Positions 9,262 to 27,335 of a stretch of 64,000 nt of DNA are shown here, piece by piece; the stretch's first letter is position 1, and each line of letters begins with the position of its first letter. Both the position numbers and the translations under genes were made by a program. The stretch spans positions 6,256 through 70,255 of the forward strand of contig ADNK01003312.1 in the NCBI GenBank assembly GCA_000320545.1, in the 5' to 3' direction. Source of the DNA: Bigelowiella natans CCMP2755. Lineage: Eukaryota > Protista > Cercozoa. The notes beneath the pieces are model-generated. The model was not told the DNA's origin and made no database searches. It worked only from the letters and a program-made list of their open reading frames with translations.

Positions 9262-10670
9262 CAACAGTGCTATAAAAATGACGGCGCTCATACACACACA
9301 CACGCACACTCTAACACCACGACATCGACATGGATCGATTGGTCTATTTGTTACAATGTCAATGCTCTAGTGTTAGAGGCAGTCTACCTAGCTACTAGTG
9401 TTGTCTACTATTCCAGTTAGCGTTTCTGCAATCAACGACAAAGTGTACTATTGAAAAGATATGTATCTCAAATATGTTACTGCATACCAACATGTCAGCA
9501 ACTACTGCAGGCATGCACTTCTAGACTTCCGCATTATCTAGTACTATATTGTGACAGTGTGACAGTCGTACATAGTATGATTGCACACGTATATGTTCTT
9601 CCGTATACATAGCTCTACTCATCGCATCGCTATCATAAACTTGCCGAGATAAACGTTGAATTCGTGAGCAACAATAGACTCGACGAAATTTGTAAATGAT
9701 AGCAAGCAAGCAGGCACACACATAGACATATATCTTTTTGCACACTCTTTAGAGTTGCATTGTGCATGCGCGCGCGGCACGCGCAGCTGTAATATGCACA
9801 CCATTTGATGTATACATGCATGCACTCTATCCTCCTACATAACATTCGTCCGCATAGCAGCAGCAGAATAAAATCACTTTACGAATAATTTGCTATGCTA
9901 GCATGGCTCTGCAATTTAAATTTGTACATTACAATCATCATTTTTCTTCCTGGCCGGTACCATCGTCAGAATTGTTATTCGTGCTTTTACTATGCACAAT
10001 CCTATGACAAAATGAGTGGAAGTTGACATAAGATTGATGCATTTGGATACGATAAATGAATTCTATAATTCAACAGCAAGATAAAAATATACGCATATGT
10101 ATCTACCGTAGTGGTGTATATCTTGCAAATGATAATATTTCAACGCAAAAATCATGTAATAACCACCACTACTATCACTGCGACCATAACAATAGTATCA
10201 GCGATTTTGATACAGCGACATGACAGTCATTGTCTATCATAGAGAAATAAAATACGATAGGTTTCCTCCTCCAAAGCATTGGATAAATTGAAATACTTAG
10301 CGGCTAGTTTATTTTTTAAGTTGCAACCTCAAAGCATATTCGAGGACGTCTCGACTGATTTTATCCAAAGATCCACCCTTCGCATTGCCGTCATCTGACG
10401 TATTCCAAAAGGGTGTTGTAAGAGTGGCAGACGCAGTGACGAGCATGCATGTTCCCCTCGCTGCTATCTTTCAAAAGATCTATATCTTCCAAGGTCTATT
10501 TTGCTGATGGCATTATGCTTCAAATTGTGTCTTTAGTGTGAGGCAGGGCATGAGATTCAAGAGTGCTGTTATTCATGCAGAATCCCTCCGACATCGACGT
10601 AGCTACACACGGATGCGGCGTCAATGCTGCAAATCGTAGCGCCTCTCTTCGGATCTTGTCGATGACACCA

Positions 10671-11861
10671 TTATGGAGGCGGAGAAGACATGAAAAACAA
10701 ATCATCCAAAATATCCATACCGCTCTTCTCGATGAAGTCTCCGGCACATTCCTCCCAAACCGCATGCCGAAGAACACTTGCGCTTGTAGAGGAGAAAGAA
10801 GAGGCAGCTTCATCCCTCAAATCTCGCAAAACCTCAAACGTCTAAGATGTCCAAGCATGACACAATAAAGACGTGTCCTCGATCGAGCATCTCAAACGAT
10901 CACACCGAAAGCGAGCGCCTCAGCTCTCAACAAGAACGAACAAAACAAAAACGAAAACCCTTCCGTGTTTTTGCCATTAAAAAAAGTTCCAATTTGCTAT
11001 TTTGGAAGAATTGCGTGTGGCATCACTCGGACCGCTCATTTTATTCTATTGCTTTCCTCTACAAAGTCCTCAATCACTAATCACCTTTGTGTCAATGTCG
11101 CACAACACGTCTCGCAGCTCAATTAGCGAGGTTGTTGACAGGATTGCAGAATCGCCCAAAGCTGCAGTTGTTGTCGTATCTGACGATAAATCACGTCTGC
11201 TTGAGCGTGCACCCACCTCCCCATTATATGTTTCTTTTTCTTCGCGGCTGATCTCCTTCTTACTCTTCAACTCTTTGCCATTTCCTATATTCATGGAATG
11301 CCTTTCGTCGGCAGCGTGAGGCGATGACAACCAAGAGTCGAAGCATATCCTAAGGGCAGATCGTGTTGTTGTTAGGCTGATGAATGCCTCAAGCAGATAA
11401 AGCGAGCATTGGAAGCTACGCGACAGTGAAAGAACTTTTAGAGCGAAAGAAAGAAAGAAAAATTTATAACGCAAGCTAATCGGGCTGTTTTCGTTAGTAT
11501 ATCACTCCAGCCAAAGCACCAACTCGAGTTACGACTAGAATGGATTCATTTTCATTCAATGTCTCCATTTGATAATCTTGGGGAAGTCAAAATTCGTCGG
11601 TCAACACCCCAGCGTACATTGAGGCTGAACCCTACCGTTGCATCTGCTTGGCAAGGCGCATTTGTGCGCGCTGGAACATTATCGCGTCTTCTTCATTTAT
11701 ATCAAGTTTCTGTCGGTGAGAACAAAGGTATTCTGTAAGCGCAATCATTCAGAGCAAACCCCAATTGATACTCAACTCTCAAATGCAGGTGAAACAACCA
11801 TATTACGACTCTAAGCACATCGCCTGAAATATTTAACATCTCTCCCCTACTTATATTCGTT

Positions 11862-11976: not shown

Positions 11977-12012
<36 letters not shown>

Positions 12013-12434
12013 GACAGAGCGAGAGAGAGGGAGAGAGAGGGAGAGAAAGAGGGAGAGAGAGTGAGCCGGGGGGCGAGGTATAAGGATAAGTATAAACATA
12101 ATACATGTATGCACGTGCGGGCGCGTGCGTGTGTGTATCTATGTGTGATTTAAGGGTGGTTGCTTTAGTTTCCATGCCCCCCTCTTTCTCACCACTTGTT
12201 CCTGTTGACTGTCTTCAGGATTGAGATGGAGAGCAGGAGAGTCGTCGATACCGTCATCCCAACCATGCTCATTATATGAAGAGATGGTACTATTTGTATG
12301 AACGACAGCATCGGCAGTAGCAATAACGCTTTCATTGAAATTTTTGGAAGCCCCCTCGAATTTCACCCGAGCAATATTCGCCTGCACTTCTTTCCTACAG
12401 ATGTGTGAATACACGTATGTATGTATCTATACAT

Positions 12435-12480
<46 letters not shown>

Positions 12481-13072
12481 CAATTTAGAGTGGCGCTCCT
12501 ATTGCTCGTCATTACCGCTGCTGAAGTAGTTTGACAAGAATTTTCACTCTAGTCGCGGGGGAGGGGGAGGGATGTGCTGTGGCTTCAACGGTCAATTTAG
12601 ACGTGATCAGCATGGAAGGTGAGGAGAAGATGAGGGACGGGTGGTGTCGCAACGAATGCCCCGTCATTCTGGCTGAAATTGGCCTTTTCTTGGTCGAGCC
12701 CGACGTTCCAGCGGCCATTGTGAATGCTATGAGAGTCACTGTCGATGCAATAATGCGGAAATCTTGAAAAAACATATCTGCTTTGTAGTAATTCCAGCTT
12801 CCCTCCCCACTGTGTTAATCCATCACGAGTGAACGGTAGACCCTCACGATGCTGGGCAGGGGAGGCGAGGAAGGAGGAGGAGGAGGAGGAGGAAGGGGAT
12901 GGGCATTGACAAATGGAGACTGATGCTCATTGTTCTCCTGGTAAAGGACTCTGCGTGTGCGACAAGAAAACGAGGCGATTTTGACCCGTTTTTGATACAA
13001 AATCATGTCGCAGCTTTGGTTTATGAGCGATGTCGAGAGTCGCGGCACAGCCTCTCTCATCGCATTCATCAT
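10671..13072 (-). CDS. Hypothetical multi-exon protein
   Basis: Long open exon-like blocks bounded by AG/GT at ~11083-11474, ~12192-12396, ~12512-12775 and ~12840-13072. The last join reads ELRDVLCDIDTK|TFEVLRDLRDEAASS...DDLFFMSSPPP* (stop 10671). No recognisable domain; 5' structure unresolved. Confidence 0.5.
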
Positions 13073-13139
13073 CGTCGTGTCATTGAATGCGAACCTGCTG
13101 CGTTCGATTCCTGCGAAAATCCTCAACACTGACAAAAAT

Positions 13140-13920
13140 CAGGCTCCATTGGGATGAAAGAATGTCAGGTTGACGAGCGCAAGTCCAGATCGAAATTTTG
13201 TGTGCACTTGCGTGCTTGCGTGAACGTTTGGAAATCATCAGACTGAACAAGATGCAACGCCAGAACGAGTGCAGTGCAATTGGGACTCGTGCGCCCATGC
13301 CAGCATGCGCATGCATGGGCATCTAGCTAGCTAGACCACGCGCATGCCAGCATGCTAGCATGCCCCCTTGCCAGCTTGCTGGCTTGGCGCACAATGCAAA
13401 TTGCTCGCTAGCTCGCGGAGTGCAACTGCTACGCTGAGCCAATGGCGTTGTGCAAACGCAAAACTTCAAATCGTGTGCATGATTGCAAGACGATCAGTGC
13501 ACTTAGCAAGTGCTTGTGTTCCAAGCTAGCAAGATTCATGCATCGATTGCTGTCGTCGCGTCTCACTTGTCAATTTCGTCCGATCTAGTCGCACAAGCTT
13601 TGTGCAGCTGACACATGTGCATGAAGAAGCTAGCATTGATCACATTGGCTTGCCTGCCAATCGCACCGGCACGAATTGAGGTTGGATGATTGCGGGCGCC
13701 ACTGCACATGCGCAAGGCGAACGATGAAATGCTCACCAGTCTACACGCATCTAGTGCTACGAATGTGTTGAGTCTGCATCATGCTAGCATGTTTGCTCAC
13801 GACGAGGTGGTGTCGGAAGTCTGGAATCGTGTTGATATCTGGCTGACAAATTTAGGGGCTAGCAACATGGATCATGTCTCAAGTCGTAGTGCCACACTAC
13901 ACATCCAATAGAACATGTGA
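13140..13920. repeat. CTAG/CATG-rich intergenic island (decayed repeat or hypermutated domain)
   Basis: Dense CTAG, CATG and TGCA, no microsatellites or long homopolymers. Shares TCTAGCTAGCTAGACC (13322-13337) with 47911-47926. Confidence 0.55.
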
Positions 13921-14013
13921 AGTACGTACCTTCATCCCGTGATTAGATTCTATTCATCTAGTCATGGCAGAACCGATGACAAAATTTGGAAAGCGAATTT
14001 CGTTGTCACTGCA

Positions 14014-14362
14014 TCAGCTGTGTTTCGTGTCTGCAGCATTCCTCTTCACGTTCATTTCTCTGCGACCATCCTACATGAAATCAAAAGCATATCTGAGCAC
14101 CGTCTAGATTATATGCATATATAAATATAAATAAATAAATATATATTATATTTCCACCACCAACGCATGACGTTCTACTGGTGAAATTGTGTAGCGCGTG
14201 TTTGTATATGTTTGACCACACCGTATTATCCACTCCTCCTGAGTTATTTTCTTTCGCATCAGCATGATTGTCATCGTCATCCGCATCTAATGCTTGCACC
14301 AAGCGGACAGTTCCATCTGTTGGGAAAAGAGATATCGTTTGTATTTCTATAGCAGATCGTTT

Positions 14363-14400
<38 letters not shown>

Positions 14401-14895
14401 GCACACGCACACATTTCAAGGCTTCTCCTGGCACGATTTATGTGTTGTAGTATTTCATATTTTCATGCAATCTGATTCCAGCTATTTGCGTTTGCTGGCA
14501 AGATATTAACGCAGAGACTTAGCATTTTAAAGAAACATCGACGGCTTTTTTCTTACATCAGAAAAAAGTCGTCATCATTGACAAGCAAAGACCATCATCG
14601 GTGTTGCAGGAATCTTGTGATTTCGTTGTTTCAAAACAAAACAAAAAGTCGCTTAACCCTTTTCTCTTTTCTCGAGAGAAACTTCAAGGTAATCCTCATC
14701 CTACCGTCAAGATCACTCAATCTCACATAAAAAATAACAACATGAACATTGCTCTCGATTTTATCCATTGATTCATATCATTAAAAATGCTGCAAACAAA
14801 TATCTTAAAACCATCATCACCAACGATTATGATCTCTTCGCACTCACCTCGTTTTCTAACGGATTATCGCTCAGTGGCAAGCTGGATCCCCTACA

Positions 14896-14931
<36 letters not shown>

Positions 14932-16434
14932 TTTATCAGCAAGTGACACCGAGCCAGGCTTTACACAACGATGAAGCCGACATTTGAATGGCGAGTGGAC
15001 TTACCAGGTGTACTCTCGTACGGCTTCTAGCTTGTGCCCCTTGTTGCTGACGCAGTTGGCATGTGCTGCCGCGATGATCTTTGCAAAAGAGAAAACCGGG
15101 GAAAAAACAGTTAAAGAAAACGCTCTCTTTCAAGTAAGAACGTTCATCAGAATATGTTATCGATGCTCCGCTATCTTCAGTAAACAAGTGGTGGTAGTGG
15201 CTGAGAACAGTGAATCGTCTCTAAATCATACCTTTCCTTCCCGGTGGATCACCATCAGAAACGGCTTGTTGGCAATGAAATGGCGCCTCATTGTCTGCAC
15301 AAGCCCGGAGATAGATTGGAACGAGAAGGGGGGGTGGAAAGGTAAGGTTTATTGTACTATTGACCACCCTCTCTCAATATAACTGCGAATAAGATAATGC
15401 TGATGTGAAGGAAAATGCCTTAGCTGTTCTTACTTACCACGGTCTTTTGCTCTGTAGTCATCCCAGACCCGTGAGCATCAGCTATATCCATTGCGAGTTG
15501 AGCACGCTGAACGACCACAGCACAAGGTAGGATGGACGGGGGAAAGCATAATTATGTAGGCGAAGAACAGAATACGAACGACTCGCGTCTCGCGGTGCAT
15601 AGCCGCGCTAGAAAAGTGAATATGAAAGGAGTGGCAGTGCTGTTACTACTTCGCCTTTGGGGGCCAGCGTAATAATAGTTTTCTGAGTAATTCCAGACAG
15701 TCTATGGCACAAAAGAAATACAAACTGATGAATAATCCATCTCAACGAGAGAGAGAGAGAGAGAGGGGGGGGGGGGAAGAGGAGTCTTCTTGTGGATGCG
15801 AATCTGTTTTGCACATATAAAATACACTATTTGATTCAAACGAAATGGTAGTCAACTTTGCAGGCATTTCCTTCTCGCTCTTGAAGGCTGGCCCCCAGTC
15901 TCTATCAAACACCATGATATATCATCAACAACAGCAGCAGCAGCAACAACAACGACAGTAACGAGCGTTCTGGCTGGTCTCACCACCACATCTAACACAC
16001 ACGCTCTATGTACGACCTAGTCTCCTCCAAGATTCTCTTGCAGCCCCAGGCCGCCATTTTCGGTGCCATGTTGACTAAGAATGACGTTCACGGTGTTATC
16101 GAGCTTCCGCAGTAGTTCAGGGGAGAGAATGCGCGCAATTTTGGCAAACGAAGAAATATGCTAAGACAACGCCTAGACAGCATTGCCCCATCCCCTCGTT
16201 TTTGATGACAGAAAGAAAGGACAAAGTATGGAAGGCTGCAAGCTGGAAATGATGGATTCTACAATCTTCTCCGCTTATTTGATCGCCGAGGGTCGTGCTC
16301 GAAGAGAGGAAGTTAACACGGTAGTAACCGGATACAACGAAAAATCATGGGGCAGAGGAGATGGTACAATAAACAAATCTTCAACGCATCTACCACTCCC
16401 CTACCATTCCCTTCTTTCAATGTTTTCGTTCGTT

Positions 16435-16468
<34 letters not shown>

Positions 16469-16958
16469 GCCGTGCTGCTTGTTTGTCATCTCGTCGCACA
16501 CACCCGTATGTTCAATTTCCCCCATAGGCAAGCTCATGTGCGTAATACACCTGAAAGCAGAATATTTATTGAGGGGAAGAGAGGGGGGGAGGGGGGAGAG
16601 ATAAACGTGATGCCGTGTCGCCGTTTCGCCACCCAAAACTTCTTCCCGCAGCTACTCTCAGGTTTGATATGATTTTGCTCACAAATAGTGCAAGCTACAC
16701 GTCACCTTCGCCCGATTCTCTTCTCATCGTACATCGTGCTGACCAGAGACTTTAGGGTATTGTACTCGGTGCTGACTCGTCCTCTGCGGTCTCTCTGCGT
16801 AATTGGACAACAATCATCAAAATGCAAGCAAGCACGAGGGCACACAATCTGAGAGACAACCCAACGATACAAAAGCGATATTCACCAGAACAGGAGGTAA
16901 ATAGTAGGAAATTAATTGATTGGAAAACATGTAAATTAAGATCGCTTTTTCAAGCGAA

Positions 16959-17039
<81 letters not shown>

Positions 17040-17714
17040 TATTTAACCTTTGGGCGTTTGAGGAGCTTTTCTAAGCTGGGGGGCTCAAAGTTGTCGTTGT
17101 CCCTGTTACAAAGAGGAAGGAGGGCATCTTCAAACACGCGCTCTCTCCCAATACCCCCCAACGAATAAAATACTATGCACACTTGACTCTGATCAAGCTG
17201 ATTCTTTCTCGATTGCGCCTTTTCATGCTATTTCATCACCGTCGTCGTCATCACTATCATCATCATCATCATCATTATCATTATCACTATCACGCTGGGT
17301 GACAACAACAACAACAACAGCAGCAGCAGCACATTGATTCTGTCTTAGGTTCATCTCTAAATGGAGATAACCGTGCAATTGCTATGAGAACGCCCTCTTT
17401 TTGATTCTTGAGCTTCAAATGCGTCACATAGGCATCCTTGGTAACCTAACGAAGGTGGGGCGCGTGGGTGGGGGGGGGGGGGGGATGGATCTCAGTTTGA
17501 TGATATATTCTCGATACACAGCACACTGCTGTAGCTCAATCGTCGTCGTTGTTGCTGTTTTCTTCATTCTTCCAACGATTTTCAGGGGTATATTCAGCAG
17601 TTTGGATCAAGCACTCCTCTGCGCCACTACTACTTCTGCTTATTCAATTGAATTGAATTGAATTGAACATGGCATTGATGCAGAATCTACATGCTTCTTC
17701 TTCTTCTTCTTCTT

Positions 17715-17748
<34 letters not shown>

Positions 17749-17830
17749 CAGATAAGGGCATTTGACCCACCGAAGATGCATAAATCTATGTCGCAACACG
17801 AAAAAGGAAAATTGTGATGATGGAATAAAA

Positions 17831-17866
<36 letters not shown>

Positions 17867-18147
17867 CACACCCATACACATTAAGAAAAAGACATTTGCG
17901 ATTAAAAAAAAAAAAGAAAGTGCATTCGTATATTCGTTGCATCATTGGTTGTTCATGAAAACTAGACGACTCTCGTCGGTGCATCAAACAAGCCACGCAT
18001 CGCATCGTCTGAGGGGGGGGCGGGAAAAGGAGGTGATGAGTGTGGGTTGGCGCCTTACTGCGTCCGAACTTTGTGCGTTCTCGAAACGCGGAAGAATTGG
18101 AGATCAGGCCTAAGTCAAACCCCAAAGTTCATGAACACATGGTTTTT

Positions 18148-18197
<50 letters not shown>

Positions 18198-18439
18198 TCC
18201 ACATGAGAACCAATCGATCTTATTCTGCGACAGCAGAGGTGGTACATTTGCGTGTTTGCTGTGTGAAAAGCGCGAAAGGGTTCGCTACCTAAATTGGCAA
18301 TCGTCGCACCATTCAGGGTCAAGCCTAGCAACAGCATTTTGCATGCGACAACCAATGAGATGATTATGATGCGTATCTGAGTAGAGATTGTTAGCTCTGA
18401 CACCCATACACCAAGTATCTATCACGGCTATGCCCAGGG

Positions 18440-18478
<39 letters not shown>

Positions 18479-18712
18479 TATACGTTATACAAATCTCCCA
18501 TTCTGGCAAAAATAAGGCCCTACACGGTTTTAGTACCCAAGCTCAAACTTCACGTGCCAAGTAGGTGAACAGTGGATAACGGATGTCGTGACTGCTGAAA
18601 CGCCTACGAATTGTCCAAAATGAAACGATTTATTTGATAAGAATATGGGAATCAAAAGAAGATAAATTTAAGGAAAAAGCAGGATAATCCTCACAATATT
18701 CTGCTATGGTTA

Positions 18713-18747
<35 letters not shown>

Positions 18748-19235
18748 GAGTGCTTGCTATGTTATCAGATCAGTCACCTCTGAGCTTCGTTCCGTAGATC
18801 TTTTCAACCTCTTCATGCGTCTTTTTCTGTTTAAGAGGCAACGCTTGAGTAAAGCAACCAGCAATTCAATTGTACACACGCACGTATGTTTGTACTCTCA
18901 TAAAACGCATTTACTTAGTTGGAGACTGGCATCCAATCTCACCAAAATCAATGCCGGGGTGACCCCACGCGCGTTGTTGTTTTTACGGTCATTTGTTGTT
19001 ACCTTTACCCACCAATCGATCGGCTCGGAATTCTTAGCATTTGGCTGTTAGCATGAGCAAGCAAAGGACAATTAGTTGTCATTTACTTGTGTTTTTCAGC
19101 CTCTCGTCTGATGCCTCATAAATTTCGGATTTGATGTGGTGTTGTTCTGCTACGAGAGAATTAAAGCTGTACCCTTCCAAGTTGCTCGATGAACTCTTCC
19201 TTTGACAAATAGCCAGAGCTAATATTGACCCCGCC

Positions 19236-19275
<40 letters not shown>

Positions 19276-19919
19276 CGCACAAGCGAGCGCACACATGCAT
19301 ATTTTCAGATATCCATACTCTCTCTTTGCGTATCGTGTTATAAATCATGATTTCCTTACTACAACTACTAAGACTACTACCACCACCACCACCACCACCA
19401 CCACCACTCACTACTGATGATACAGCAATAACTACTATTACTACCCCAATGTAACTACTACTAGTACGACTACTATAATAGTACTAAGACTACTATATAA
19501 TTACTTGTCATCATCAAGGGCGGTGAATACAAGTTCAAGCATTTCCTCTCGAGACTCGCAATCCTGCATCGCCACCTGTATGATAACCATCGCCATAGTA
19601 GCGCCACACACCACACACCACACAGTGCAGGAAGAGATAATCAGCACCCATTGGCTGCGGCACTCACACGGAAGGGGGGGGTGGTAAGCTTTCTAATCAG
19701 CAGCCCTCTGTTTGTCTAGTGGTAACATCGTCCTTGTCCCCCACCAGCCACCCCCCCCTCTCTCTCTTCCTCTTTTCAGTCGCTGAGTACATATTTGTCA
19801 TCATCCCCTGTACCGCACGTGTGACATATGTGGTACCGGGCTAGATGCATGGGCAAGCGATCGCGCGGCGAACTGACCGTCAATTAAGGGGGGGGGGGGG
19901 GGGGGAGAGATGGTCGTCA

Positions 19920-19960
<41 letters not shown>

Positions 19961-20266
19961 AACACACACACACATACAAGCATATTATATATATTGATAT
20001 GCGAATGGTCTAATCTGGCTGCTCCGTGGTTTTGATTGAGTGTAACAACAAATCAAACAGATTATCTGCTAGTAAATCCTCATCAAGCATGCAGAGGTAG
20101 GCTCTCACTACTACTACAACTGCTACAACTAATATTATTATTACTATTGCTACTACTACCAGGAGATCAGTGGCCAGGAGAGTAAAGTCCTCTCCACTGC
20201 AGTAATTCTTATCACCAACTGAAAATCACAACATTTAGAGGGAGGCGCGTCTCAAAATGGAACATA

Positions 20267-20330
<64 letters not shown>

Positions 20331-21752
20331 TCATATGTGTGTTTATGTGCGTGTGTGTGTGTGTGTGTGTTTGTGTGAATAGGCTTGGTATGGGTTGATG
20401 AAGGATGAAGGAGAAACTAAGAGTGGTAAGATTCTCCTCTCCCTCCTCCCTCCTTTCCCCCCCTTCTTCTTCCTGCTTCCCCCCCCCTCCTCCTCTTCCT
20501 TTTCTCACTCTCTGACATACCTTTTGCACGGCAGTTGATGGTGATGAAATCAATGAAATCTTCCTTGTTGATGAATTTGATATCCTCCCTCTGACAAATT
20601 CAGGATTATTGAACAAGGCAGCTGTCACCACACAGCAAGGGCAACATTCATCCTCATCATCATCCTGCAAACCATCATCATCAGTATCCTCTCGAATCCC
20701 CATTGCTGCCAGCCACCAATTGCTACTCTAACACGTCTTAAAGCAGCAGCAGCATGCGCCGGCACCTTCATCTCCTTGAGAATCAATTTGTAAGGAACGA
20801 GGTTGAATTGTTTCTGGAAAAGTCACGAGAGGAGAATGCATGAGTCACTAGAAGGAAGGGCCGAAGAGGCAACCAATCGGCAATGAAGGAAAAACGACCA
20901 TCACCATCGTCGTCATCACCATCACCGCCACCACCACCACCAACAACAACAACAATAAGAAGAGAAGAAGCGCTAAAAGCCTTCATAGCAATGGTAATAG
21001 CGAAGCGTAATGAGAAGGGAATAGTGAAAAGATGCTGCTGCAACCAAGTTTCACTCATTTTCATCGATGAGGGGAACACACGTCTGTAAATTGCGAGGAA
21101 TATAACGCACGCTAGAGCTACTTGGCATCATTGCCATTATTATACGACTAATGCCCTTCTTCGCACCGCAGCAAACCATTATTTTCATCATCACTGTCCA
21201 ATATATCGATGAATACCTACCAGCGTCTCTGCTTTCCTTTCAAGGAAGTAGATGTTTAGCTTATCCGCTAATCTGTGGAGGAGGAGAGGGGGGGGGGGGG
21301 GAGGGGGGGGGGGGCTGTGAATGATGACGACGATGGTGATGATGATGATGCTGATGACGATGATGATGGTAATGATCATAGCACGTCGTTGAAAAATCAT
21401 CCTTTGCGGGGTTGGAACTGAGGTATTGCCAATTCTCGACGCTACCACTACTACTACTACCACTACTACTACTACTTCTCCTTCATTATCTTCTCCTTCT
21501 TGTACCACTACTGGTACTGCTGCTACTACCCCTGTCATTCCTATTACGGCTGTTACTACTATCTATGCTGCAGACCCCAATTTTGCTACTACAAAACTTC
21601 CTTTTTTCGTTTTTATCAAGGGCACATTCAGTGTCAGTTCATCTTACTTTATCAAGCTCGTCAAATAGGGCAGTAAGTCGCGTGGAACCACCCTGATTAT
21701 GAGCGTTGGTTGTGTGTGTATGTCAGCCCCCCCCACGGCCAGGAAGGGGGAG

Positions 21753-21787
<35 letters not shown>

Positions 21788-22003
21788 GAGGAGGAGGCGT
21801 CAATTAAATCACTTCGCCACAAAATTTCCAACAGAATTACAGAAGCTTGAAGCTACTTACACAGATGATTCTCTCTCTCTCCCCCCCCCTCTCTCTCTGC
21901 GAGTGTATGTGTGGATTACATTTGCCACTCTTCCCTCAAAGTAGGAGCCCTGATACAGACGTATTCGTGTGAGCAAGCGTTTTTTGGTAATTTCGTGTGT
22001 ATG

Positions 22004-22039
<36 letters not shown>

Positions 22040-22596
22040 TGTGTGTGTGTCGTTAGAGTGAGAGTTAAAGTGTTTGTATCGCCGCCTCCACGAATTTTCT
22101 ATTCCCTCCATCCTCCCCCCCCCCCCCCCCCGTTGGGTATTTGTAGTGCGTGCTTGCGTCTTATTGACCGTTGTTCGATTCCCAGCATCACCTCCAATAA
22201 CTTTGTAGAGCTGAATGAAGAAGATAGTACTCATTGCACGCACGAGAAGGAGCAGCAGCAGCAGGACAGCCACCACCACCACCACCACCACTACTACTAC
22301 TTGTCTGATACTAGTAGTACTTTTATATTGAAATCTTCCTTCGTATCACCAGGGATCCATATTGAATGGCAAAACCTATTTTTTGTGCATGTAGTAGTTT
22401 CGCATCAATGCCTTGTTCTTTGTTCATTGTTCATTGCGCAACGACAACGAAGACAAGGAGGGACTACTATTATAAATGTATTATTACGCTGATGATTTCT
22501 CAGCATGTATCTCGTGCCAATCAGCGTCCTTGTGGGTATTATCTGGCCAACAACAAACATCAAATTCCAAGCCAATGCCGGCTGATTGTACTTGAG

Positions 22597-22632
<36 letters not shown>

Positions 22633-23124
22633 TGTCTGCCGTTCGTTTGAAAACTGACTTTCCATATCATCACGTTTTTTCTGTTCTTTGTGCAGCTTTG
22701 GGATGATTTTCTCAAAGTCGCCAAAGGCCTGGAGAAGAAGAAGAAGAAGAAGAAGAAGAAGAAGAAGAAGAAGAAGGAGGAAATCGCCAATATCATCAAC
22801 CGCTATTATTATCATTCCTCAGAATAGCGATGAACGCTTCCCACCTCGCGCATGGCTAAGCTTTAAAAGCTGTGGAAACAGCTTTAGGGAAAAACTATTC
22901 GAACACTACTCAGCTTCTTCCGTGCAGGCATGCAATCAAAGACCTCCAGTTTACACACGACGCATCATGCATGGGGGTTCCTTCTAAATTAGACAATCAT
23001 TACCCGAACAAGCTCTCGCTTGGTGCTGCCGTAGGTTGCCGATTGAAGCTAGTAATCATAATAAGGTGGTAGTGCAAGCATATGTTTCGTTATGGAGAGT
23101 ATTCGCGCGGGCACACATAGTTGC

Positions 23125-23176
<52 letters not shown>

Positions 23177-23432
23177 AATATGTATTATAATTATAACGAA
23201 CTTACCATGAGGAGGACAATTGTGACAGCGATCGGTGAAACTACAACATTCTGAAAGCAAGTAGCAAGGTATAAATGTATGATATTATAGTATGTTACAT
23301 TATCTAAGCTACATCAACAGCATTTATAATTCATTATACTGGAGGAGAATATGTGCTTTTGGAGGGAAACAACAAGAAGCGTGCACGTGCTCAATATTTG
23401 TAGAGTAGAGATCCACGTTTTAATATTAATAC

Positions 23433-23502
<70 letters not shown>

Positions 23503-23696
23503 GCGCTCTCTAGTCCTCGTCATCATCAATAAACATGTTTTTCCAGATAATAACTCTTCAACGTCTATATTCTTTTAACTCGTAGCAAAAATTCAAGCCT
23601 ACTCAAAAGAACCTGCAACGGCCCATCGTTCCGCTTGAGCTCTTCCAGCTGCAATGTAACAATAGCCCATCATCGCCATCAACATACCGTCATCAC

Positions 23697-23729
<33 letters not shown>

Positions 23730-23791
23730 TTCGAAAAATCTATACGAATAGAGGCTTTTATGTGATTTACACATTGAATCTCATCACTGTG

Positions 23792-23834
<43 letters not shown>

Positions 23835-24135
23835 CATATACATATACATATACACACAATATGCATTGTTAGTTGCAATACTACCGCGAAATTTAGAGCG
23901 TCAAAACCCAGAAGATTCAACTGCTCCTCTCTCAAAACTCTGAGCAGCATGTACGCCTACAGCATTCCAACAGAGTTATTAAACTTCACGCAGAATCTTG
24001 AACTCAGTGAGATTTAGATCACATAATTACGATCCTTACTCTCTCTGTGGCGTCCACGTCTTCCGCATTTAAACCCATTTTGGCTTTCATTTCCTGTACA
24101 CACACACGCGCGCGCGCGCGTATACAGACATGAAG

Positions 24136-24186
<51 letters not shown>

Positions 24187-24728
24187 GTTGAAAATATGTG
24201 TGTGTGTAGTGTATGTATGTGTGTATGTGTGAGTATGTGTATGTGTGGGGGTGTGCGTGTGTGGAGACTACTGTAGATTCTGAGTCATCAAAAAATCAAC
24301 GCTCACATATCCTTGCAGAGCCAGGCTATTTTTCATGCGAATAAATTCGACAAAGCAGTTATTTCCTTCTTACCTCTTCTGTGGGAGGGCCATCGACCCT
24401 CTGCTGAAAGCTGCAATTTCCCATTTTATCTCTCGAAAAATCCTGATGCAACATAGCATGAGGGTTAATGTAGCTTAAGCTTAAGGAGTAGCTGTTAATG
24501 TCCTTGTCTGGATAAACATAGCGATTTTCCAATGTCGTATCGATCAGATTCGCTCGATCAGCAACAATACGTGCGTTCTACTCCCTAATATTACTGCTGT
24601 GCGTAAAGGCAGCTTCCGCTATGACTAGGAAAGTCACCAGATCAAGGAGGGGAGGCGAAGGGTCGTTCCGTGCAAGCTACTTGCTCCTGATTCGTAACTG
24701 GCTCAAGTAGCTCAGCTTTAATGGACAT
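14014..24728 (-). CDS. Divergent intracellular serpin with an internal EF-hand module (~41 exons)
   Basis: Phase-consistent chain with serpin motifs in correct order: LNLLGFDAL (hA); NVVVSPIAVTIVLLM|LQSATYGSTKREL (23206-23250, 23004-23048); FCHSIWI (s2A); PIDWWVK|KKT (hF, 19003-19044); VTTSVIHCSPTWHVKLDPE (s3A); FRVSRTHKVRTQFM; SLPMGEIEHTVNMAPKMAAWG; LSGITQKTIITLAPKGE (s5A/hinge, 15650-15701); HFIANKPFLMVIH (serpin signature, 15232-15294). Canonical EF-hand FTALDDDN|SGYLSKEEF at 19505-19575/19173-19218. Start and terminal exons are less certain. Confidence 0.85.
19173..21692 (-). other. EF-hand (calmodulin-like) domain inserted within the serpin coding sequence
   Basis: Eight exons translate to GGSTRLTALFDELDK|DDFSTT|LADKLNIYFLERKAETL|KQFNLVPYKLILKEMK|REDIKFINKEDFIDFITINCRAK|VGDKNYCSGEDFTLLATDLL|VAMQDCESREEMLELVFTALDDDN|SGYLSKEEFIEQLGR. 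One canonical loop (DDDNSGYLSKEE) and up to three degenerate ones. Confidence 0.75.
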
Positions 24729-25179
24729 ATGTCATGATGGTAATGCCGTGGATTCTTTGCTATATATCAGTGAAATTTACTTTTTTTTTTAAAATATAAT
24801 AAGATTTTTGAACTTCTTGGAAAAATGAAACCACTCCTAGTATCTGAAAATTTTCGTCGCCTTCTGGAGCGAATCTCTTTAAGACGATCGGGGGGATTCG
24901 AAAGATGAAGAAGATACGAAATAGCCTATAAATGAAACAACAAATAGATTTTTTGCTGAAAGCAATCACATAATCGGAAGGATATGGACTCAGTATTGAA
25001 AATAATTGGTTCTTGTATGTCAATGAAGCGATCAGTCCCTGCGGATTGAAATTAGTAGGTATTTTTTTGACAGCGACAATGTTTTGCGCTGGTTTATGAT
25101 TATAGCTTTAAAATATAGGCGGATTTCTTTCTGCGTCATGCCGATTTGAAGGTTGTTACTGCAACACCGCTGGGCACAT
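24729..25179. promoter_or_regulatory. Putative bidirectional promoter (serpin / methyltransferase)
   Basis: ~450 bp AT-tract-rich head-to-head spacer; inferred from gene geometry only. Confidence 0.45.
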
Positions 25180-25925
25180 ATGTTCTGCTATGAGTGCTCG
25201 CAGCCTTCCCTCCCCCTCGCTAAATTGTCTTCCTCAGATCTAATGTGTTCTATCGTAGGCATACAAATAAGCGTGAACTGAGGCTTCGAGAACTTAATTG
25301 CGGTGGTGTATGCATTCGATGCTACACTGACGGGGTATGTGGCAAAAATGTTTGCTGCTCACCTGGCGTGCTGTTGAAGCTCAAACATCTCGATTGTATT
25401 CTGGTTTTGGATAGGAGCAAGAAAAGTACTTTCCTATCCCCTTTCGCAGCAAGGCATCGCAATCGTCAACCCCATCGTCTGCGGGATCTGTAGAAGCAGT
25501 ATTAACAAAAAGAAGGCGTTGTGATGACGACGAGGGCAACGACGACGAGGACACCAGCATCAAGGAAGGGAGAAGGGAGGAAAAGGGGGTTGAAGATTGC
25601 GATAAAAATGAAAATGGCAATGATAAGAATGATAAACAGGAAATGCTCCCGGTAAGCCATTCGTGAATCAATTATCATGTGTTCACGTCGTTGTGTCCAA
25701 ATACAAGCTTGCATGTGTCTGCCTTCTAGTTTGAAGATTTTAACTAAATCCTCCTCTGTCGTATTTCTTGATGCTGCCTCTCTCCTCGCCATGAAGGTCG
25801 ATCGTATTCTACAGAACAGAGCAATTACGCTGTATTTAGAGAAATATCCTGAGGAGAGTAGCGATGAGATAGTGCGTGCGCTGTGGCTATGGCTTCCATC
25901 TAAGGTATGCATTTGCACATGTATT

Positions 25926-25981
<56 letters not shown>

Positions 25982-26028
25982 GTGGCAGAGACAGAGATAG
26001 AGACACACAGAGAGAAAAGAATACTCAT

Positions 26029-26068
<40 letters not shown>

Positions 26069-27335
26069 AGTGTATCTGTTTATGCACGCGCATGTTTAAG
26101 ATTGTGAGTGTTTGCTCAGATTCTGACCGATGAGGTTATGAGGCTACTAAAGGATAATGAAGCGTACAATAAGCCAACAGCCAATATCCTTGAGCTGGGA
26201 GCAGGCGCAGGGGTTGTAGTAAACATAGAAACCGAACAGCGAGAACAGCAAAAATCGATTATACCAATACACAGCGTATAAATAGTGATGATGGTGTGAA
26301 TGAGGGTAGTCGTAGTCAGGTTTTCCTAGCATTAAAAGCTACACGATCGCCTCCATAGCCGTGTTGCTATCGTTTATAGGTTGTCGGTATATTCATCTCG
26401 AAAGTGTTCAAAGGAGCATGCGTCTACATAACGGATAGAAGCAAAGCGGCCTTGCAGGTAGTACAGATGGAGGGGGGGGGGAGAGAGAGAGAGAGCATGA
26501 GAGTGATAGTTGCAGGATATAGTTATGGTACTTGGAATCATACATTGATCTCCCCCATTCTAAGGTCGCTACATTAAATGCTGCTCTCAATTGTGACGGT
26601 GTCGGATTAAGGAGGCAAAATGCTAGTAGATCCCAACGGCATACCCCCCCCCCCCCTCCCTCCTCCTCCTCTGGGGACAACGAAGATCCAACCAATTGCA
26701 GGGGACAGAACACGGCAACCGTTGTAATGCAATCCCTTGTGTGGGGGGAGGAGAAGACTCAGCTCACGCACGTTGCTCGATATGATGATAATGATAATGA
26801 TGATGAGGAGGAGGAGGATGATGATGATGATAATAACACTTATGCTGGACGGCAAAGCTATCCAGATATCAAAGGTTTGTTCAGGCTCATAGGAAGTAAA
26901 GGAATCCCCCGTAGAAGTAGAGCGGCATGAGCATGCATTTTCTCTGTGCTCTGTCTCCGGAGATGATGGATACCTTGGGAGAGTGGAAAAGCCTATTTGG
27001 GACCCACACGTAAACGTTATGCTTTTCGCGCGTGTGTGTGTGTGTGTGTGTGTGTGCGTGCGTGTGCTTTTAGGGAGCAGTGCACAGCCCTCCGCTACCC
27101 CCCCTGCCCCCTGTGCCGGGTTCAAACTGATAATGGCGTCTGATGTGTGCTATGACGACGACTGCGTCGTTCCCTTGTGGAATACGATAAACAGGTGAAT
27201 GCCATGTAGAGCATGTGCCAAAAAATCAACTAGCAAATTTGTGAGGGCTGCTGATTTGTCAATGACTGTGTATGTGCGTGTGTGCGGCTAGGTATTTATC
27301 TCAAGAGAAGGAATCGCTGTTCATAATGTTGTAAA

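Follow-up and report, generated by a model that had tools for sequence, protein, structure and literature searches.

Our analysis identified, within positions 14014-24728 of a 64,000-nucleotide stretch of the Bigelowiella natans CCMP2755 genome (contig ADNK01003312.1, positions 6,256 to 70,255; hereafter the window), a minus-strand gene in which exons coding for an EF-hand are spliced between exons that very probably derive from a serpin. The best explanation, to which we give a probability of roughly 0.6, is that this is one expressed nuclear gene encoding a divergent serpin fold, with an EF-hand insert in the linker between strand s1A and helix F, and that its product is likely non-inhibitory and carries the insert as a Ca2+-dependent docking or regulatory lobe. 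A first-pass annotation, made from the letters of the window alone, had described a serpin interrupted by an EF-hand module just before helix F and had suggested that it is switched by calcium. The transcripts bear out the interruption; the calcium switch found no support in our tests, and the hinge and reactive loop of the inferred exons argue against it.

One mRNA joins the EF-hand exons to the flanking exons

Transcript contigs from four RNA runs of several studies were mapped to positions 17600-23599 of the window. Three of the runs, each from a different study, yielded one contig (2446, 1952 and 1900 nt; depth 55-80) that spans this interval in short spliced pieces; since these pieces abut in the coordinates of the contig records, the contigs represent spliced mRNA. 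They define one mRNA made from 22 minus-strand exons, each 30-71 nt long, between 17749 and 23648. Fourteen of its 18 introns are seen as listed skips in the contigs, and four come from loose ends and record arithmetic: the loose ends match exactly 17756-17785 and 23616-23645, giving two further introns, and a 31-letter contig piece mapping to 21919-21948 is flanked by two more. After normalisation, all 18 introns have GT..AG borders on the minus strand.

The RNA-joined sequence from 21272 to 17749 forms a single open frame, the other two frames being full of stops. The EF-hand exons (20590-20521, 20218-20160, 19575-19505 and 19218-19173) share this mRNA with the serpin exons, GSYFEGRVAN (21949-21920) lying upstream of them, and PNAKNSEPIDWWVK (19044-19003) and KKTHEEVEKI (18826-18778) downstream. 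The decisive junctions are verified by RNA, namely VFTALDDD/NSGYLSKEEF (19505/19218) inside the EF-hand, EQLGR/PNAKNSEPIDWWVK (19173/19044) at the exit from the insert and WWVK/KKTHEEVEKI (19003/18826) within helix F. The EF-hand exons are thus neither skipped nor part of a separate nested gene in the contigs of the three studies, and the serpin is interrupted just before helix F, as had been proposed, with GSYFEGRVAN upstream and EPIDWWVK/KKTHEEVEKI downstream in the same RNA.

Several details of the first-pass annotation could be settled at the same time. Its exons 23206-23250 and 19173-19218 are exact by RNA, and the coordinates 15232-15294 were recovered in our splice-site model. The peptides that it quoted all lie on the minus strand where it had placed them, with the exception of 'LFDELDKDD', of which only LFDELDK exists. 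Its 'LQAS' exon (21841-21852) is absent from the mRNA, in which GSYFEGRVAN is spliced to GGSTRLTALFDELDK (21692-21648), and its estimate of about 135 residues for the insert gives way to about 230-240 by contig arithmetic. The gene is, as it had remarked, undetectable by open reading frame (ORF) search: the region has no long ORF, and a six-frame domain search is blind to the gene.

The exons were completed beyond the RNA (one upstream, nine downstream) from splice sites, phase, codon usage and serpin patterns, which gave a best-effort coding sequence of 33 exons and 728 codons with zero internal stops, running from 23956 to a stop at 15001-15003. The exons and the links between them are as follows.

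23885-23956, minus: inferred exon, helix A, AYMLLRVLREEQLNLLGFDALNFA; AG/GT sites, phase, helix A pattern N.FA..L; no RNA
23613-23648, minus: exon LEELKRNDGPLQ; contig loose end 23616-23645, intron 23251-23612 with GT..AG, upper edge from CAG acceptor
23206-23250, minus: exon, helix B, NVVVSPIAVTIVLLM; both junctions in RNA contigs of three studies
23004-23048, minus: exon, helix B to C, LQSATYGSTKRELVR; RNA junction 23049-23205, mapped piece 46 nt, donor GTAATG
22729-23003, minus: inferred link with a candidate 34-nt exon at 22910-22943 (VFDCMPARKKL); contig pieces here unplaced (repeat mask, short pieces)
22659-22728, minus: exon, helix D region, AFGDFEKIIPKLHKEQKKRDDME; RNA piece 22659-22724, junction 22543-22658
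22488-22542, minus: exon NNTHKDADWHEIHAEKSS; both junctions in RNA
22321-22375, minus: exon, s2A, AFCHSIWIPGDTKEDFNIK; both junctions in RNA, 37% identity to the s2A-like exon of the second serpin gene
22169-22210, minus: exon, helix E, LYKVIGGDAGNRTT; RNA junctions
21920-21949, minus: exon, s1A, GSYFEGRVAN, final serpin exon before the insert; 31 letters at the joint 21690 to 22168 in all three contigs
21648-21692, minus: first insert exon GGSTRLTALFDELDK; RNA piece 21648-21690, acceptor CAG, donor GTAAGA
21273-21647, minus: microsatellite-rich stretch, source of most of the 254 unplaced mRNA letters; contig record arithmetic
21221-21272, minus: insert exon.LADKLNIYFLERKAETL; RNA piece, junction 20814-21220
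20766-20813, minus: insert exon KQFNLVPYKLILKEMK; both junctions in RNA
20521-20590, minus: insert exon REDIKFINKEDFIDFITINCRAK, degenerate EF-like loop; both junctions in RNA
20160-20218, minus: insert exon VGDKNYCSGEDFTLLATDLL; both junctions in RNA
19837-19872, minus: insert exon FAARSLAHASSP; both junctions in RNA
19505-19575, minus: insert exon VAMQDCESREEMLELVFTALDDD, E helix with the initial third of the canonical EF loop; both junctions in RNA
19173-19218, minus: insert exon (N)SGYLSKEEFIEQLGR, remaining EF loop and F helix; both junctions in RNA
19003-19044, minus: exon PNAKNSEPIDWWVK, serpin resumes at the start of helix F; both junctions in RNA, aligns to profile 157-170
18778-18826, minus: exon, helix F, KKTHEEVEKIYGTKLR; both junctions in RNA
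18537-18603, minus: exon, s3A, GVSAVTTSVIHCSPTWHVKFEL; both junctions in RNA, aligns to profile 186-204
18289-18324, minus: exon GLDPEWCDDCQF; both junctions in RNA
18059-18109, minus: exon RPDLQFFRVSRTHKVRT; both junctions in RNA
17749-17785, minus: exon QFMHLRWVKCPYL; 30-nt loose end of all contigs at 17756-17785, donor 17748 inferred
17333-17445, minus: inferred exon, s2B-s3B, VTKDAYVTHLKLKNQKEGVLIAIARLSPFRDEPKTES; splice sites, phase, serpin pattern; no RNA
17048-17102, minus: inferred exon, helix G, MDNDNFEPPSLEKLLKRPK; splice sites, phase; no RNA
16812-16848, minus: inferred exon IVCPRACLHFDD, the least certain, with a 737-nt intron next; ab initio chain, phase
16017-16074, minus: inferred exon, s2C, FNMAPKMAAWGCKRILEETR; matches the serpin 'LPKF' region, ab initio pick made without homology
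15826-15901, minus: inferred exon, s6A/helix I, DWGPAFKSEKEMPAKLTTISFESNS; ab initio pick, matches the pattern 'LG...aF....aD.s.I'
15650-15682, minus: inferred exon KTIITLAPKGE; same donor from ab initio and profile-guided chains
15438-15506, minus: inferred exon, s5A and hinge, RAQLAMDIADAHGSGMTTEQKTV; profile-guided chain, pyrimidine-rich CAG acceptor, GTAAGT donor
15232-15294, minus: inferred exon, s4B-s5B signature (FIANKPF), TMRRHFIANKPFLMVIHREGK; strong splice sites, best single serpin-profile piece
15001-15126, minus: inferred last exon RAFSLTVFSPVFSFAKIIAAAHANCVSNKGHKLEAVREYTW, then stop; phase, open frame

The exon that follows the link at 22729-23003 begins either at 22802, in which case a (CTT)n poly-Leu run would be coded, or at 22728, both being in frame. 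At the 5' end, contig X1 extends at least 445 nt further upstream of 23956. Start-codon scoring gave values near zero for every candidate, including the ATG at 24728 and MGNCSF at 24424; a candidate first exon in the open piece 24362-24424 (minus strand) begins MGNCSFQQRVDGPPTEE, and the MGNCSF start does not fit the myristoylation pattern. The cytosolic location that the first-pass annotation had deemed probable, having seen no signal peptide, depends on one such candidate start and is accordingly tentative. At the 3' end, the stop at 15003-15001 overlaps a perfect GTAAGT donor, and the gene may continue past 15001 toward 14014. The protein would thus be of about 730 residues or longer, with a serpin-like scaffold.

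Two automated ways of extending the model were of limited use. Of 13 known exons, ab initio chaining based on splice matrices and codon usage found 8-9; it strayed into microsatellite frames, put the FIANKPF exon in the wrong frame and was used only where other evidence agreed, while profile-guided spliced alignment of the 3' region gave paths that shifted with the intron penalty and was not trusted alone. Genome and transcripts differ at a single exonic position in about 1.1 kb: at 21691 the genome has G where all three transcript contigs have C (minus strand), changing Gly to Ala. Contigs covering introns at 19677-19847 and 22818-22982 have a depth of 7-8, compared to 55-80 for the main contigs, and look like unspliced precursor RNA. 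Tandem Repeats Finder returned 39 rows for 14000-24800; di- and trinucleotide microsatellites lie in nearly every intron of the gene and in none of the RNA-verified exons. An Rfam scan of 13000-26000 gave no match at threshold.

The flanking exons resemble serpins

Homology was assessed with a local profile built from 18 intact Bacteroidota serpins, and the comparison was restricted to the RNA-defined exons with the insert excised, so that none of them had been chosen by homology. hhalign aligned this chain over 148 columns (P 2.6e-5), from helix B to s3A (profile 54-204); the alignment is unbroken across the point of excision and pairs SYF with lDF in s1A and EPIDWWVKKKTHEEVEKI with ETINNWVAEKTHDKIRSI in helix F. 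The local Viterbi score was 25.7 bits, compared to 14.1 +/- 1.8 in 60 shuffles (z 6.4). Blocks found by hmmsearch fall in the correct order (profile 58-89, 157-184 and 364-390, the last in inferred exons), and of all single pieces on both strands of 12000-27000 the FIANKPF exon scores highest against the serpin profile (7.2 bits, profile 371-389). The conserved elements helix B, helix F, s3A (to 204) and F.AN.PF are found in the order of the family, and in the inferred exons we identified helix A, s2C, s6A and the hinge by eye. These comparisons make it very probable that the flanks are homologous to serpins, and we read the sequence as that of a very divergent member of the family.

One might object that the motifs are there by chance and that the gene is one for an EF-hand protein whose flanks have nothing to do with serpins, given that Pfam searches, exon by exon and in six frames, yielded no Serpin match here and that the hmmsearch scores against the local bacterial profile reach only 12-16 bits. 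The exon-wise miss is accounted for by the size of the pieces (10-23 aa), and chance would have to explain ordered blocks at the right profile positions, the hhalign and shuffle statistics above, a top-scoring FIANKPF exon at the correct end of the profile and a similarity to a second serpin gene of this genome that does pass Pfam (see below); we find this explanation very improbable. Exon-wise Pfam hits to Kazal_2 (14.8 bits) and RSN1_TM (16.6 bits) were under the cut-offs and were dismissed as chance, and a search of protein representatives with the s3A exon returned only two unrelated repeat proteins. Among sampled Bacteroidota genomes, 68 of 401 contain a serpin, and in a Prolixibacteraceae genome five or six serpin genes stand in tandem (contig C31:14011-20168, loci L009-L014).

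The six-frame PF00079 search of the whole genome found only the second gene, on contig C2541 (loci L001 and L044), one exon of which passes the Pfam Serpin model with 29.6 bits (cut-off 27). Compared to the gene studied here, it has 41% identity in the helix B exon and 37% in the s2A exon, and its exons are longer. About 730 nt separate its s2A and helix F exons, compared to 3.3 kb in the insert-bearing gene, leaving no room for an insert of such size. Its helix F/s3A exon lies at L001:1468-1650 (minus strand) and another of its exons scores 15.2 bits; the 3' half of the C2541 gene could not be modelled using the bacterial profile.

The inserted module

The insert contains a canonical 12-residue EF loop, DDDNSGYLSKEEF, which is read across a splice junction verified by RNA. 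It agrees with PS00018 throughout; we take this signature to call for Gly at position 6, a hydrophobic residue at position 8 and ligands at 1, 3, 5 and 12, in a loop between two helices. The claim of an internal canonical EF-hand is thereby upheld. The Ca2+-loop sequence within the helical module is DDDNSGYLSKEE, and its flanks, EEMLELVFTAL and FIEQL, are helical in character. The signature is matched once in the gene model and nowhere else in the 127,996 aa of the six-frame translation of the window. The Pfam EF-hand model matched none of the individual exon pieces because an intron splits the loop. Judging from its sequence, the module most likely binds one Ca2+ ion. Of the degenerate EF-hands that had also been suggested, two or three helix-loop-helix elements are indeed present, but KREDIKFINKED and KVGDKNYCSGED, the upstream candidates, have no ligands at positions 1, 3 and 5, and the spacing from the upstream candidate to the canonical loop is 41 residues rather than the usual 24 or so.

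The insert as a whole comprises about 230-240 residues, of which some 85 lie in microsatellite DNA. Its N-terminal part, of about 100 residues, is probably of low complexity, and its C-terminal part is a helical module of about 125 residues that contains the one canonical EF loop and the two or three degenerate elements. The contigs contain 254 unplaced letters between their record positions for 20590 and 22321, where the microsatellite-rich DNA is masked; together with the two flanking exons they make 351 nt, a multiple of three, so that the frame is kept between clearly coding exons. No chain of well-formed small exons in this stretch sums to 254 nt, and no single intron of 119-123 nt within 21221-21692 leaves the frame open. 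An 85-nt intron at 21563-21647 followed by one exon from 21562 to 21221, with an open frame of 114 codons, is a solution to which we give about even odds. Should the hydrophobic Val/Ile runs of the microsatellite stretch truly be translated, a membrane-tethered protein would be an alternative reading.

Within the genome, the EF exon is most similar (52-61% identity in a search for EF-exon paralogues) to the EF-hand exons of a tandem gene on contig C1317, whose copies at about 10583-11135 and 20316-20871 (loci L046-L049) are 85-92% identical to each other. The first exon of the C1317 gene, MGATKSSEISGLSREEVANAIFRHLDDDNS, likewise seems to stop within the Ca2+ loop, and this, together with the likeness of the EF exon, hints that the module came from the C1317 family by exon shuffling. 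No serpin-like exons were found beside the C1317 gene (contig positions 3000-25180, 22 kb), which apparently encodes a stand-alone EF-hand protein, unlike the serpin-embedded module here. The start of its first exon, MGATKSSE, is possibly an N-myristoylation signal.

The insert might also be a tolerated passenger with no role of its own, formed by microsatellite expansion and an exon-shuffled EF fragment in a permissive loop of a serpin that is losing its function. The abundance of microsatellites in nearly all introns and possibly inside two exons, the homopolymer runs coded in the best-guess model, the distance of the sequence from other serpins, the short reactive loop and the lack of an insert in the C2541 paralogue are all in keeping with this idea, but the frame is open across 33 modelled exons and 728 codons, the EF loop retains every signature position and, in three studies, this mRNA predominates among the assembled forms (depth 55-80). 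We regard a neutral passenger as a serious rival to a functional module, albeit an unlikely one.

Hinge and reactive loop

In the inferred 3' exons, the hinge reads A-H-G(P15)-S-G-M-T-T-E-Q, and P12-P9 are thus not the small residues of inhibitory serpins, whose reactive loop runs over 17 residues (P17-P1). The distance between the P15 Gly and the s1C Phe (HFIANKPF) is 16 residues, compared to 24 in the bacterial profile consensus and 22 in alpha1-antitrypsin, making the inferred reactive loop 6-8 residues shorter than in inhibitory serpins. At 143 nt, the intron between the hinge and signature exons is too short to hide a further exon. The unusual hinge and short loop disfavour inhibition by loop insertion, and hence a Ca2+ gate on loop insertion; judged by its sequence, the protein probably does not act as a classical suicide inhibitor, and an inhibitory, calcium-switched serpin is unlikely.

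Such a gate would have Ca2+ binding clamp, move or release helix F over beta-sheet A, thereby controlling loop insertion or protease inhibition. Although loop insertion in serpins requires a shift of helix F, the insert is joined directly to the N-terminal end of this helix and the hinge retains its P15 Gly and P14 Ser, the inferred exons place M-T-T-E-Q rather than small residues at P12-P8, the loop is short by the 6-8 residues noted above, there is just one canonical EF loop, and about 100 probably low-complexity residues between s1A and the EF module make rigid coupling unlikely. On balance we consider a calcium gate improbable.

A proposed Ca2+-dependent lobe on a serpin-like scaffold

Solved serpin structures place the s1A-helix F linker on the surface, as a loop at the pole distant from the reactive loop. 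The inserted module is therefore likely to fold on its own as a separate lobe and to leave the core unbroken. With Ca2+ bound, the EF lobe might dock to a partner or a membrane, or tune helix F locally; calcium would not, in the view proposed here, gate the stressed-to-relaxed transition.

A number of points weigh against this view. RNA support is confined to 17749-23648, which leaves the 3' half of the gene (hinge, reactive loop and FIANKPF) and both gene ends to modelling, and within the insert 254 nt of mRNA are unplaced on the genome. The exon guessed at 21562-21221 is 36 nt longer in the genome than in the transcripts and contains three microsatellites, compared to none in the RNA-verified exons. 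There is only a single canonical EF-like element, and EF-hands usually function as pairs. Lastly, the region was picked for its serpin motifs, and to this must be added the modest hmmsearch scores and the missing Pfam Serpin match discussed above.

Serpins are a classic metastable fold and, to our knowledge, their extra domains are nearly always terminal. A full-text search of the literature found no serpin with an internal EF-hand. A large serpin phylogeny dropped non-conserved insertions and sequences that deviate by more than 25% from the median length (PMC8233489), a filter by which variants such as the present one would be missed. A probably self-folding module at the foot of helix F would indicate that this site tolerates large insertions and, if calcium does affect the fold, would provide a natural template for ligand-switched serpins. 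The exons of 30-70 nt, which hide the gene from ORF and six-frame domain searches, also point to a blind spot in the detection of such genes.

Comparison with known systems

The gene shares with canonical serpins (PF00079; alpha1-antitrypsin, Bacteroidota) the order of elements from helix A (N.FA..L), helix B (SP.a....L.M...G.T..EL), s2A and s1A (..F) to helix F (I..WV..KT...v..i), s3A (..W...F), an LPKF-like s2C, the G-S hinge and F.AN.PF. It differs from them in the s1A-helix F linker, which is about 8 residues long in the bacterial profile serpins and about 230-240 here, in the non-canonical hinge and the reactive loop that is 6-8 residues shorter in the inferred exons, in its very low sequence similarity and in its division into at least 33 tiny exons.

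Internal insertions have a precedent in clade B serpins such as PAI-2, in which the C-D interhelical loop of about 30 residues is flexible and has a function of its own. PAI-2 thus resembles the present case in that the serpin fold accepts an insertion in an internal surface loop, whereas the insert described here is several times larger, probably self-folding and located between s1A and helix F.

The dockerin is an EF-hand-like, Ca2+-binding helix-loop-helix module. Serpins that contain one are known from cellulosomes, as SIGN-Doc-SERPIN in Ruminococcus flavefaciens (PMC2930009) and as the serpins of Clostridium thermocellum (bioRxiv 10.1101/2020.04.21.053413). They too combine a serpin and a small Ca2+-binding helix-loop-helix module in one chain, and use the latter for docking; their dockerin, however, is terminal and not inside the fold, the proteins are bacterial and secreted, and there is no evidence of a common origin. 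The terminal dockerin of the cellulosomal serpins (PMC2930009) is the nearest analogy, and for the present protein we favour a non-inhibitory scaffold whose EF module would serve in Ca2+-dependent docking or regulation, a reading that fits better than a calcium-switched inhibitor.

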